A stretch of 62,943 nucleotides of DNA, filler included, from Lenisia limosa (taxonomy: Eukaryota; Protista; Breviatea), in NCBI GenBank assembly GCA_001655205.1. It is 10 parts of 10 records of this genome, joined end to end, with 100 filler letters (N's around TTAATTAATTAA, not from the genome) between each part and the next. Parts side by side here need not be neighbours in the genome. Positions count along the whole stretch, not along the records: positions 11,891 to 16,332 come from LPNZ01010717.1; 9 more parts are not named here. One strand, written 5' to 3'. The notes under the pieces are model-generated. The model ran no database searches. It saw only the letters and a program-made list of their open reading frames with translations, and was not told where the DNA came from. Shown here piece by piece: positions 11,891 to 16,432 of this stretch (the first letter of the stretch is position 1; each line of letters begins with the position of its first letter). The position numbers were made by a program, and so were the translations under genes.

Positions 11891-12043
11891 GGGCTTTGTT
11901 CGTTTTGTTGTTATCACCCTTGTGTGTTGTCAGCCAACAGAGTTGATTTTGGGCTTTTTTGTTTCATACATTTTCCAATTTTACTCCCCCTATGTATCCC
12001 CCCGCTTGTTTCCAATTTCTACCTTTATTTTATTCCCCCCTAG

Positions 12044-15000
12044 GTAAAAGACCACATTCCGACCTTCCTGCACGCCCTCCTGGTCTGCTTTGCCGATGAG
12101 TCCTGGCCGGTCCGGGATGCTGCTTGTATTGGTGGGGGAGTGGGGTATTGGGTGGTCTTTAACAAACACTCTTATCTCGCAGCTAAATAATATCATATGA
12201 TAGTAGGGTACCTTGCAATTAATTGCCATAATTGGCACTATTATTTTTTTCGAAGAAATTAATTGCGTAATAAGTTGCAATCTTGGAGAAAATCATATTA
12301 TCTACAACATTATTTTGAAATAAAGCTAATTATTGAGTGGCTGTTGGAAACTTTCATTTCAGACTTTATTAAAAATACGTAATATACTTGTGCCCAGTCA
12401 AAAAATACGGAAGTTTATTTCTCTTTTTTACGCAACTAATTACATTTTTCAAGTCATTGCCAATTATTTGCGATGGTCAGGTAATTAATTGTACGGAGCC
12501 CTTATATATAGCATAACATAACACCACCCACCCTCTCGTATTATATGATACCTCACAGATATTGGATATTGTGTCTCCCTAGTATTCCCTCTCACCCGTC
12601 AGCCATCGGGTACTTTGTTGCTGCTCATCCCGAGGCGTGTAGACCGTTCATGGACAAGCTCAACCACCTCTGGGTGGAGACCCTTCATGATAGTGGGAAG
12701 GGGCTATTCAAGATGTGTTCATCGAAATTTCCTTCGTTTTGGTGACTAGTACCTTAACGCCAATATTCTTCGAAAAATCCTTCGTTTTCGCTTCACCCCC
12801 CAGACATTTGGTCCATTCGAGAACATGCAGCTGAGTCCTTTAAGAAGGGCATGGAAGTCTGGGAAGAGACTAAAGTCCTGGTGGGAGGGAGATCCTTTTG
12901 TTACGATTAGGGCTTCCTACGATCCGAAAAAGACCGTTAAAATATCGAAAGGACGGCTTCGGCCAAATACAGCCTTATTTTTTGCTATTATATTCCTTAT
13001 TTTATATTTCTCATTGCTTAAGGGGGGGGGGGGGGNNNNNNNNNNNNNNNNNNNNNNNNNNNNNNNNNNNNNNNNNNNNNNNNNNNNNNNNNNNNNNNNN
13101 NNNNNNNNNNNNNNNNNNNNNNNNNNNNNNNNNNNNNNNNNNNNNNNNNNNNNNNNNNNNNNNNNNNNNNNNNNNNNNNNNNNNNNNNNNNNNNNNNNNN
13201 NNNNNNNNNNNNNNNNNNNNNNNNNNNNNNNNNNNNNNNNNNNNNAGGCTGAAACGTCTCGTCGAAATGCCGGCTTAGAGAACACTACTTCCTTCGGTGT
13301 CGCTGCAGCCAAGGCCAAGGAGGAGGCTAAGAAGAGGTCAGGAAGGGTCCACTCTTCTTGGGTATTGGGAGTTTTCGGTTTTTTTTTTCTTCTTTTTTTT
13401 TTCTATCTCACAATTCAGGGAAGACAATGATATGAGCAGTCACGACAACAAACAGGTAATGCTTATTGGGGTGGTGGTGCTTGTCCATCCAATTCAGGGC
13501 ATAGAATGGAGCTTTCTAGGCCTTATTATCATATTGGTTTCTATTTTAAAGTATCCTTGCTCAAAAAGAGTTTATATTCTATTACAACCCCATCCCTTGT
13601 GGTGCTACAGAAGCGACTAGCCTTAGCTTTGTTTTTGTTTTTTTCAACCTTGTGTGTTTTTCTAATGTTTAGCCATGGAGTTGATTTGTTGTGTTTCATA
13701 AATTTTCCAATTCTACTCCTCACCTCCAGGTATTTTCCTGCGGTAGCCTAGCACCTAAGCTGAAGAGGGGCGGATGCGGCTGTTTCGGGGCTGGCACGCT
13801 GAGGCCGTCCCAGCCCTGGGAGAGTAGCGACGGGTTAGGGGGATGTAGCGTCTTGGCTTTTTCCCTGTGGTGGAGTAGGCGTTTTAGTACTTTGATTGGC
13901 TTGATGTGGGAAGGTTAATATTGTTCTTGTTTCTATAATGTTATTTTTTTTTTGCTTTCTCTTCTTTCCATTCACCGTCTTCTTCACTCTTTGGTTTGTG
14001 ATCCACCTTTCCCCCGATATGTATTGTTGAGAGTTTTTCTCCATTATCCCCCCTCCCGTACGTTGGAGTGATGGGATGTGGTGCTGNNNNNNNNNNNNNN
14101 NNNNNNNNNNNNNNNNNNNNNNNNNNNNNNNNNNNNNNNNNNNNNNNNNNNNNNNNNNNNNNNNNNNNNNNNNNNNNNNNNNNNNNNNNNNNNNNNNNNN
14201 NNNNNNNNNNNNNNNNNNNNNNNNNNNNNNNNNNNNNNNNNNNNNNNNNNNNNNNNNNNNNNNNNNNNNNNNNGCCGCCTTGCTACTGCCTAAACTGGCG
14301 GAATTGGTGGGACAGTTTCTTTCATCTTGTTCCCCTAGATTTCATATTGCTCAAACGCATTCCCCATATTTGATGCTTTTTCTTTCATTTATGCACAATA
14401 TTCGTGGCTGTTTCTTTCATTTATTCACTATATTCGTGGCTGTTTCTTTCATTTATACACAATATTCGTGGCTGTTTTTTGATAGATAATATTGCTGACT
14501 GCTTTAGGCTGCGATGGATCACTTTACGCACTACTATTTGTTGATGGAGACTATTTGGAAGCAAATGCCGGTAGTTATGACGGTAAGCTGTATTTATTAT
14601 TGTATCAAAGTGGTTATCAGTTTTCCAATTTTNNNNNNNNNNNNNNNNNNNNNNNNNNNNNNNNNNNNNNNNNNNNNNNNNNNNNNNNNNNNNNNNNNNN
14701 NNNNNNNNNNNNNNNNNNNNNNNNNNNNNNNNNNNNNNNNNNNNNNNNNNNNNNNNNNNNNNNNNNNNNNNNNNNNNNNNNNNNNNNNNNNNNNNNNNNN
14801 NNNNNNNNNNNNNNNNNNNNNNNNNNNNNNNNNNNNNNNNNNNNNNNNNNNNNNNNNNNNNNNNNNNNNNNNNNNNNNNNNNNNNNNNNNNNNNNNNNNN
14901 NNNNNNNNNNNNNNNNCTTTCCACCAATATTCTTCATCTTAATTTCCTTCGTTTTACATTCCAGAGAGCCCTGACATGTGATAATCGTTTGGCTCAGGCG

Positions 15001-16175
15001 GCAGCAGCCACTTCTATTGGTGGGGTGGGATGCTCTATTATATTATTCATCGTAACACCTTTCTACTCACTATTTTTCAGTAATGGTCCATTAACATGTT
15101 TCCCAAATGCTTAGCCCCCCCCCCCCCCNNNNNNNNNNNNNNNNNNNNNNNNNNNNNNNNNNNNNNNNNNNNNNNNNNNNNNNNNNNNNNNNNNNNNNNN
15201 NNNNNNNNNNNNNNNNNNNNNNNNNNNNNNNNNNNNNTCTCAACCCTCTTGTTGCTCCAACAGAGTTTATTGTGGGCTCTTTCATAAATTGTCCATTTTA
15301 ACTTTTGTCATCTGGCTTTTGTCTAGCTTTAGCGTTGGTTGCTCATGTTTGCTATTGCTTGTTTTTTTTTTGTTTTTTTTGGAGTTTCAGATTAATTAGT
15401 ACTTTTACGCCAATTCATTGAAATTTCCTTCATTTTACTCCCCCAGAAACGTGGGGTTTTTTTATTCATAAATTGTCCATTTTAACTCCCCCAGAAACCT
15501 GGCGCGACCTCGTGGCGCCCTCCATCTTCGACGCCCATGTGGCCAAATACCCCGGCCTGCAGAACGTCATCAACCGCTGCGAGTTCGTTACCGCTCCTCC
15601 TCCCCGCACCGGCCCGGGTTCCTGGTTCTAAAGTGGGGGGTTGTATACCTACGAAAAAAAACAAAACAACACCCTGTGTTCTTTGAGGGGAGAAAACTCT
15701 GATGAGAACCCTGTGTACTTCGAAGATTCTCACAGGGCTTCGCTTCGATTCGAAAAAGGACTGAATTTCTATTTTATCAATATAATACAGGTCTTTTTCG
15801 AACCAAAGTGAAGCCCTACTGCTCTCATCTTCATCATATCACCAACCCCCACAGTCACCTCTCACACTTCAGGTATTCTTTGAAGAGCTGCACCCAAGAT
15901 TTGTCTGTTTGTCTGTTTGTGACGACTGGCTTAATAGAAGTCTGCTGACAACCCCGGGATTGCATTGGACTCCATTCGGTCCGAAAAACACTGGTTTATC
16001 CAGATTTATCGAGGTTAGAGGTTGTTGAACTTACCCCTCGCGGCCAAGAATTGCAAAAACAACATCCAAATATAAAACTGAGACACGGATACATTTATAC
16101 CACCAAAAGTTAAATGCCCGACAAAAAGAAGCCACTCGCTCATACTCTCAACACGAGTCTGGAAGCGTTAATTGA
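12044..16175 (+). CDS. HEAT/ARM-repeat protein, 5'-truncated and partly in gaps
   Basis: Spliced exons: VKDHIPTFLHALLVCFADESWPVRDAACI-AIGYFVAAHPEACR...LHDN-IWSIREHAAESF, VFSCGSLAPKLKRGGCGC...QPWESSDG, DHFTHYYLLMETIWKQMP, ALTCDNRLAQAAAATSI-ETWRDLVAPSIF. WPVRDAA and WSIREHAA are HEAT-like. The 3' end (TGA 16173-16175) is less certain. Confidence 0.65.
12204..12503. mobile_element. Degenerate ~300-bp hAT-like MITE, family G, intronic
   Basis: Imperfect TIRs TAGGGTACCTTGCAATTAATT and (reverse complement) AAGGGCTCCGTACAATTAATT; TSD not clear. Confidence 0.5.
14378..14480 (+). repeat. Tandem repeat, 32 bp x3, intronic
   Basis: Unit TTTCTTTCATTTAT(G/T/A)CAC(A/T)ATATTCGTGGCTG. Confidence 0.85.
15733..15818 (+). 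mobile_element. hAT-type MITE, family A, internally deleted
   Basis: CAGGGCTTCGCTTCGATTCGAAAA...TTTTCGAACCAAAGTGAAGCCCTA; TSD not recognisable. Confidence 0.75.
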
Positions 16176-16432
16176 TAAGGGGGTCTGGATACCAGGGAAT
16201 AAAAAACAACTGCAGATGTAGAAATGAGAAATTAAACAAGGAGTATTTGGCCGAAGCCGTCCATCCCATCATGCTGATAAGAGATATTTGATCTATGTAT
16301 GATATTGATGATTCTATTCAGCTATTTATTCANNNNNNNNNNNNNNNNNNNNNNNNNNNNNNNNNNNNNNNNNNNNTTAATTAATTAANNNNNNNNNNNN
16401 NNNNNNNNNNNNNNNNNNNNNNNNNNNNNNNN

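Follow-up and report, generated by a model that had tools for sequence, protein, structure and literature searches.

The window analysed here is a stretch of 62,943 nucleotides (nt) of Lenisia limosa (Breviatea; assembly GCA_001655205.1) joined from ten parts. The subject of this work is the introns of a single 4.4-kb locus within it (positions 11891-16332, from LPNZ01010717.1), so that any genome-wide statement is an inference from one gene. The locus carries, on the plus strand, the 3' third of a protein-coding HEAT-repeat gene conserved in eukaryotes, with its last ten visible exons. The G-rich 5' ends and C-rich 3' ends of these introns are, with a probability of roughly 0.55, ordinary U2-type splice signals of the gene, the 3' parts of the introns having been copied separately. 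A preliminary description had read the ends as near-perfect reverse complements, either descended from an element bearing terminal inverted repeats (TIRs) that carried both splice sites or pairing with each other in the pre-mRNA. The reverse-complement appearance is mostly a by-product of composition and, on present evidence, should be taken as evidence for neither a transposon nor a structure.

Six complete introns (1, 2, 4, 5, 7 and 9, each numbered after the exon before it), nine donors and eight acceptors are visible, and all introns are of the GT..AG kind. Five of the nine donors begin with GTGGG, while the others read GTCAGG, GTAATG, GTTAGG and GTAAGC. In the 40 nt following each donor (9 x 40 nt), GGG occurs 24 times as compared to 4 times in 1205 nt of intron interior (about 20-fold, Fisher P 1e-12); none was found in the 8 x 40 nt before acceptors. 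CCC occurs there 14 times, against 22 in the 1205 nt of interior (2.4-fold, P 0.008). A branch-like yTnAy motif with its A at about -8 to -11 was found at seven of the eight real acceptors, in the variants CTCAC, TTCAC, CTGAC, TTTAC or TTAAC, and at 7 of 61 decoy AGs inside introns (Fisher P 2e-5). The acceptor end ACTCCCCCAG reads as a putative branch-site 'AC' followed by a C/T tract of 6-7 nt and AG. The U12-type 5' splice site RTATCCTT (RTATCYTT in Physarum) is absent from the nine donors; a U12-type reading of the TTCCTT...TTTTAC motif was rejected, the donors not being RTATCC.

The motifs GTGGGGGAGT (12132), GTGGGAAGGGG (12693), GTGGGGTGGG (15020), GTGGGG (15451) and AACTCCCCCAG (15484-15494) read exactly as had been described. 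For the acceptor quoted as 'CACCCCCAG' at 12802, the C-richness is real and the letters are not, the sequence there being CACCCCCCAG (12794-12803, six C). In an exon model that is phase-consistent and collinear with homologues, 12132, 12693 and 15020 are true donors, and 12803 and 15494 are true acceptors. GTGGGG at 15451, proposed as a further donor, is not used: it would leave a 4-nt microexon (AAAC, 15447-15450), which is ruled out by the resulting frame shift.

The match of 9/10 between a donor and the reverse complement of an acceptor does exist, between the donor of intron 1 and the acceptor of intron 9, but it is not intron-specific: it is the highest score among the 72 donor x acceptor combinations, whose mean is 4.36. 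Pairs from the same intron give 3-6 of 10, in agreement with the earlier remark that pairing within an intron is shorter. The likeness of ACTCCCCCAG and GTGGGGGAGT arises from a G-run facing a C-run, from the T that GT and CT have in common, and from the choice of the best of 72 pairs. Its "GAGT/ACTC" part sets a neighbour of the donor-side G-run against the putative branch site; nothing suggests that the two are related.

Energies of the RNA duplexes between intron ends are the same for true and mismatched pairs, which, within the power of six introns, speaks against a specific pairing of the ends in the pre-mRNA. The means were -6.7 for true and -7.1 for cross pairs over 12 nt, -10.3 and -10.8 over 20 nt, and -13.1 and -12.7 kcal/mol over 30 nt (exact permutation P 0.62, 0.68 and 0.41 for the six complete introns). 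The DNA-level local TIR score was 10.4 in true pairs and 10.9 in cross pairs, and no inverted copy was seen, so an element whose TIRs carried both splice sites finds no support in these comparisons. Among 22 inverted-repeat pairs in the piece, none joins a donor end to its own acceptor end and none involves a unit of the two repeat families described below. BLAST between intron ends revealed neither 5'-5' similarity nor 5'-3' inverted similarity.

What different introns share according to BLAST is 3'-3' similarity only. In at least five introns of the gene, the 3' 30-110 nt are copies of two related repeat units, A and B. Family A (core TTCATAAATTKTCCAWTTTWAC) occupies 11891-11990, 13625-13729, 15238-15303 and 15451-15494; family B (core AAATTTCCTTCRTTTTAC) is present twice in intron 2 and also at 14917-14964 and 15397-15446. 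A 22-nt core was found four times and an 18-nt core three times, all on the plus strand, with 0 expected by chance. In family A, intron 5 and the intron upstream of exon 1 agree at 76 of 104 positions (z 13.5), and a further pairwise match is 53/72 (z 6.4). In family B, intron 2 agrees with intron 9 at 42/57 (z 7.3) and with 14917-14964 at 27/32 (z 8.1). The two families are alike over the last ~30 nt, and the copies diverge from one another by 10-30%. All eight run in the sense orientation. Five of them stop precisely at the AG of a used acceptor (introns before exons 1, 3, 6, 9 and 10), and the acceptors of exons 1, 3 and 10 carry two units in tandem. A degenerate family-A pattern, which matches three copies at this locus, had no match in metagenome contigs, and the species itself is therefore supposed to be absent from those contigs.

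Two findings were to speak against the preliminary description: true-pair complementarity no higher than that of shuffled pairs, and an absence of intron families. The former was observed; the latter was not, since two families of 3' parts exist; the introns may therefore have originated by copying.

At the end of intron 9, the copying can be followed into the exon. The sequence 15437-15456 (ACTCCCCCAG AAAC GTGGGG) repeats the true junction at 15485-15504 (ACTCCCCCAG AAAC CTGGCG) in 18 of 20 positions, as a 20-nt direct repeat. The ten nucleotides after the AG match at 8/10, which is equalled by only 0.08% of the 10-mers in the piece. Because of this repeat, the "donor" GTGGGG at 15451 is seen to be a mutated copy of the exon 10 start (CTGGCG); the doubling of the exon 10 acceptor took along the first 10 nt of the exon. 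AAAC flanks the 44-nt unit 15451-15494 on both sides, with the homology continuing to 8/10, and this flank (15447-15456) seems to be in better accord with a duplication of the junction than with a target-site duplication of AAAC. If the upstream acceptor copy at 15446 were used, 48 nt (16 codons) of open, in-frame sequence would be added; the homologues match the shorter form ending at 15494.

Other pseudo-junction copies (upstream of exon 1 and at 15303) do not extend into exon sequence above chance. Short direct repeats had also been named as something to look for at the junctions; the six complete introns have no consistent target-site duplication, the exception CAG|GTA at intron 5 being the proto-splice consensus. 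A Symbiodinium-type 4-nt duplication, in which the start of the intron equals the start of the next exon, was considered and not seen, apart from GTA at intron 5/exon 6.

The exon model was drawn by eye, its reading phases were checked, and it was then compared with homologues, the exons being searched singly by tblastn against four proteins (P0003, P0006, P0009 and P0045), with all of which it is collinear. Introns occur at about one per 80 coding bases, and exons have a mean length of about 80 nt. The features are as follows, from 5' to 3'.

11891-12043, plus strand: 3' part of the intron before exon 1, with a family-A copy followed by a second partial unit ending in the used acceptor CCCCCCTAG
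11891-11990, plus strand: the family-A copy of that intron, its end degenerated to CCCCCTATG
Directly 5' of 12044, plus strand: acceptor before exon 1, ...TTCCCCCCTAG
12044-12131, plus strand: exon 1, HEAT repeat (...DESWPVRDAACI); Pfam HEAT E 8e-4; tblastn to P0003 residues 392-423, 62% identity
12132-12602, plus strand: intron 1, 471 nt; donor ATTG|GTGGGGGAGTGGGG; acceptor CTCTCACCCGTCAG, branch-like CTCAC with A at -9
12603-12692, plus strand: exon 2; tblastn to P0006, P0009 and P0045, E 3e-4 to 7e-3
12693-12803, plus strand: intron 2, 111 nt; begins with the G-rich leader GTGGGAAGGGG, then has family-B units in tandem at 12708-12742 and 12747-12803; end TTCACCCCCCAG
12804-12880, plus strand: exon 3, followed by donor GTGGGAGGGAG at 12881, whose intron runs into the gap 13036-13245
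13248-13336, plus strand: exon 4, the start of which may lie in the gap (~15 residues missing); donor GTCAGGAAGGG at 13337; tblastn match
13337-13418, plus strand: intron 4, 82 nt, with a T-run interior; acceptor ATCTCACAATTCAG, CTCAC with A at -9
13419-13455, plus strand: exon 5, 37 nt; tblastn match
13456-13729, plus strand: intron 5, 274 nt; donor GTAATGC; G-run ATTGGGGTGGTGG at 13465
13625-13729, plus strand: family-A copy forming the 3' 105 nt of intron 5, ending in CTCACCTCCAG
13730-13833, plus strand: exon 6 (VFSCGSLAPKLKRGG...PWESSDG); 53 protein matches and tblastn match; donor GTTAGGGGGATG at 13834
14274-14306, plus strand: exon 7, its 5' part in the gap 14087-14273; phase-consistent model; P0006 26%, E 8.2; donor ATTG|GTGGGACAG at 14307
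14307-14507, plus strand: intron 7, 201 nt; acceptor GCTGACTGCTTTAG, CTGAC with A at -10
14375-14477, plus strand: tandem repeat in intron 7, 32 nt x 3.2 copies, 92% matches
14508-14582, plus strand: exon 8 (...LMETIWKQMPVVMT); donor GTAAGC at 14583; the gap 14633-14916 conceals ~21-29 residues
14917-14964, plus strand: family-B copy forming the acceptor of exon 9, ending in AATTTCCTTCGTTTTACATTCCAG
14965-15019, plus strand: exon 9; tblastn to P0006 residues 649-666
15020-15494, plus strand: intron 9, containing the gap 15129-15237; donor ATTG|GTGGGGTGGG; used acceptor AACTCCCCCAG
15238-15303 (family A), 15397-15446 (family B) and 15451-15494 (44-nt family A), plus strand: repeat units of intron 9, the last one ending in the used acceptor
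15437-15456, plus strand: pseudo-junction, upstream copy of the intron 9/exon 10 acceptor junction (ACTCCCCCAG AAAC GTGGGG), 18/20 against 15485-15504
15495-15631, plus strand: exon 10, the last coding exon; stop TAA at 15629-15631

Collinear tblastn matches (P0003, P0006, P0009 or P0045) back exons 1-6, 8 and 9, with E down to 2e-13; for exons 7 and 10, which are placed by reading phase and local resemblance, the matches are at chance level (E 8.2 and 4.8). Searching exon 6 (34 amino acids) against 1.84 billion representative proteins gave 53 matches at E <= 1e-3; P0003 is the full-exon match of highest identity (82%), and no near-identical protein was found among those 1.84 billion. Full-length relatives have about 700 amino acids with HEAT/ARM repeats and are labelled by their sources as "ARM repeat-containing" or "dynein assembly factor 5-like". 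They come from green and brown algae, choanoflagellates, cnidarians, Mantamonas, Fabomonas and others. The nearest named relatives (50-60% identity) are mixed (Mantamonas, Picochlorum, Acanthoeca) and give no lineage signal; the best overall identity to homologues is likewise 50-60%. Pfam reports HEAT, as well as a weak TPR_DNAAF5 match on the homologues. PDB sequence searches with exons 1, 6 and 10 gave nothing useful, and a word search with the open reading frame of exon 10 gave no candidates.

Around all four assembly gaps, the flanking exons keep the order and strand of the homologues (tblastn). The gaps 13036-13245, 14087-14273 and 14633-14916 each conceal about 15-29 residues that are present in homologues, corresponding to a whole or partial exon; the intron pieces on either side of them therefore belong to different introns. 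The gap 15129-15237 lies inside intron 9 and no residues are lost there: exon 9 (...ATSI) runs on in phase 1 into exon 10 (ETWRDLVAPSIF...), and the homologues show the same spacing. G14 (13022-13035) and C14 (15115-15128) homopolymers directly adjoin two of the gaps. The gaps were probably caused by homopolymer or low-complexity intron sequence.

According to the preferred reading, the donor signal would be G|GTGGG followed by further G triplets, which may act as a splicing enhancer. The 3' signal would be compact, consisting of yTnAy with its A 8-10 nt before AG, a C/T tract of 6-7 nt and AG, the yTnAy supposedly serving as the branch site. The 3' ends of introns would have grown and been overwritten through local tandem duplication of the acceptor junction and through copying between introns. 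By extension from this gene, G-run and C-run ends could be the splice signals of the whole genome.

Several points weigh against this reading. With only six complete introns the complementarity comparisons have low power, and a modest intron-specific effect would be missed. Counts of G triplets and C triplets tend to co-occur per intron (Spearman 0.62, one-sided P 0.15, n=6), and a GTGGG donor is accompanied by a CCC acceptor in 3/4 cases versus 0/2 without such a donor (Fisher P 0.2, n=6); given this co-occurrence, a generic bridging role of the G and C triplets may exist. The copies lie in introns 1.7-3.5 kb apart, and some mechanism of copying over such distances would be needed. The genome-wide status of the signals is inferred from one gene. 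Finally, exon-side ATTG (ATTG|GTGGG) is common to three real donors (12128, 14303 and 15016), where it is coding (Ile or Leu codons); it lies outside the usual splice consensus and could reflect an insertion-site preference. Sequences similar to ATTG|GTGGG, ATTGGGGTGG and ATTGTGGGC, also occur inside introns, at 13465 and 15268.

Unlikely, though the best surviving of the alternatives, is an introner-like cassette: a mobile or copy-prone unit of ~44-110 nt, with a GTGGG G-run, branch site, C tract and AG, would have seeded or overwritten the introns. The G-rich and C-rich ends would then be features of this family, perhaps spread across the genome, and not general splice signals. The presence of family A or B copies in at least five introns, 5/8 of them in register with the used acceptor, argues for it, as does a G-run (TTGGGC, GTGGGC or GTGGGG) located 15-20 nt upstream of the TTCATA core in 3/4 family-A copies. 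However, 5'-5' similarity between introns is limited to the G-run, and BLAST gave no inverted copies. The 44-nt copy at 15451-15494 starts with GTGGGG, ends with CCCCCAG and has AAAC on both sides in the manner of a 4-nt target-site duplication, but its flank homology is 8/10 rather than 4/4 and so fits a duplicated junction better; the other junctions lack direct repeats and, except for GTA at intron 5/exon 6, a match of the Symbiodinium type. The ATTG shared by three donors and the extreme intron density, as in lineages with mass intron gain, are consistent with a cassette. Introners are recognized by similarity of both ends and by copies in unrelated genes (PMC9860276); here the 5' ends lack such similarity, and the copies known so far all lie in one gene. 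The degenerate family-A pattern has no match in the metagenome contigs.

More doubtful is an orientation-fixed miniature cassette without TIRs (G-run, T-run, TTCATAAATTKTCCAWTTTWAC, C-run, AG; ~44-110 nt), which would hold the full set of splice signals, spread within and between introns, and possibly create them. Such a cassette would be an unusual introner-like element of an extremely intron-dense eukaryote, defined by its 3' module and possibly inserting by preference at ATTG|G.

Improbable, and less credible than either cassette, is generic bridging, in which donor G runs pair with acceptor C/U runs of the same pre-mRNA intron without intron-specific sequence. In introns 1 and 2 the two ends are paired in the minimum-free-energy folds but not in the centroid structures, and compared with dinucleotide shuffles the folds have no exceptional stability (z -0.49, -1.38 and -1.68 for introns 2, 4 and 1). 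The G-rich 5' end of intron 1 forms a duplex of -26.6 kcal/mol with its own 3' end and of -22 to -23 with those of introns 2, 5 and 9; over all introns, true pairs are no better than cross pairs. Donors rich in G triplets and acceptors rich in C triplets do stand together in introns 1, 2 and 9, and introns of the (GGG)m-(CCC)n type in human, for which bridging was proposed, provide a precedent (PMC4691745). Yet the co-occurrence is not significant (P 0.15-0.2), and three of the six complete introns, evidently spliced in view of their conserved reading frame, have no acceptor C triplet. Misplacement of repeated intron modules by mis-scaffolding of a gap-rich draft assembly is scarcely credible: despite the four gaps, two of them bordered by G or C homopolymers, and two module copies adjoining gaps (14616-14632 and 15238), most copies lie in unbroken sequence with exons (12747-12803 with exon 3, 13625-13729 with exon 6, 14917-14964 with exon 9 and 15397-15494 with exon 10) and differ from one another by 10-30%.

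Other elements were found in the introns and the 3' flank. Nested inside intron 1, at 12195-12510, lies an AT-rich element about 310 nt long, whose inverted arms measure 28 nt (12200-12227 and 12480-12507, 75% complementary), and the centroid fold of the intron keeps the pairing of these arms; the element looks like a small inverted-repeat transposon and may be a secondary insertion. In the 3' flank, 15734-15817 is an 84-nt near-perfect hairpin (DNA fold -23.5 kcal/mol, z -7.9), on which Rfam gave two sub-threshold miRNA-like matches only. Relatives of the hairpin arms lie at 12910-12934 (intron after exon 3) and 15967-15991, and a second inverted pair of 27 nt (89%) joins 12944-12970 and 16243-16269. 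The hairpin and the inverted pairs look like miniature inverted-repeat elements. Directly after the stop codon stands GTGGGGGG, and an acceptor-like CTCTCACACTTCAG with CTCAC at -9 was found at 15872; 15633-15872 may be an intron of the 3' untranslated region, which would contain the 84-nt hairpin.

If the acceptor modules occur genome-wide, introns would have spread by copying of a splice-signal cassette through its 3' module and not through inverted termini, which would bear on the origin of very intron-dense genomes. If the modules are local, the locus still illustrates a simple route of intron lengthening, in which the acceptor junction is duplicated in tandem and splicing continues at the downstream copy.

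Giardia and Trichomonas have compact branch-site/3' splice-site motifs with fixed short spacing. The branch-like yTnAy of the Lenisia limosa gene is similarly placed at an almost fixed 8-10 nt from AG, but the gene has numerous long introns (82-475 nt), and its motif is less strict.

A U12-type transposon model (rtatctt...aagATAT, with a TA direct repeat) was proposed for Physarum polycephalum (Larue, Elias and Roy, 10.1101/2020.10.12.336362). The argument there is of the same kind as that made for the present gene, resting on short inverted termini that fall on the splice signals and on a branch motif 9-12 nt from the 3' splice site. In contrast to the Physarum U12-type introns, those studied here are GT-AG with GTGGG and not RTATCYTT, and have neither the TTTGA motif nor the TA repeat. 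The 32 published Physarum introns mostly start with GTA (chiefly GTAT) and none with GTGGG, unlike the donors of this gene. On this ground Physarum polycephalum was rejected as the source of the piece, although an assembly rich in gaps and homopolymers and introns rich in pyrimidines agree with what is described for it (PMC4758236).

Comparable cases are the (GGG)m-(CCC)n introns and the bridged (AC)m-(GT)n introns of teleosts (Lin et al. 2016, PMC4691745), and G triplets are known as intronic splicing enhancers (McCullough and Berget, as cited in PMC4691745). As in (GGG)m-(CCC)n introns, G triplets cluster immediately downstream of the 5' splice site and C triplets immediately upstream of the 3' one, and minimum-free-energy folds can pair the ends. 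Unlike the introns of that study (PMC4691745), those of the present gene have folds no stabler than shuffles, and half of the complete ones lack C triplets.

Introners and introner-like elements occur in Micromonas, Aureococcus, dinoflagellates and fungi (PMC9860276; Roy et al. 10.1101/2020.10.14.339549). The working definition of Introners requires similarity at both boundaries, beginning no more than a few bases from the 3' one and in either orientation at the 5' one, in at least four introns of non-paralogous genes (Gozashti et al. 2022, PMC9860276); for those of the DNA-transposon type, element-specific TIRs and a locus-specific target-site duplication are expected (Huff et al. 2016, Roy et al.). 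The introns studied here have only GTGGG and G-richness in common at their 5' boundaries (blastn, alignment of intron ends), and TIRs specific to an element are not seen (10.4 versus 10.9; 3-6 of 10 matches within the same intron). The introns differ from introners in being similar at their 3' ends only, in copies that so far are all from one gene, with no TIRs, no consistent target-site duplication and no copies in the opposite orientation. They resemble introners in that a sequence common to several introns reaches the splice site, five of eight family A/B copies ending at the acceptor AG; in that the host gene is very intron-dense; and in that one small unit has a donor-like GTGGGG at its start and an acceptor at its end.

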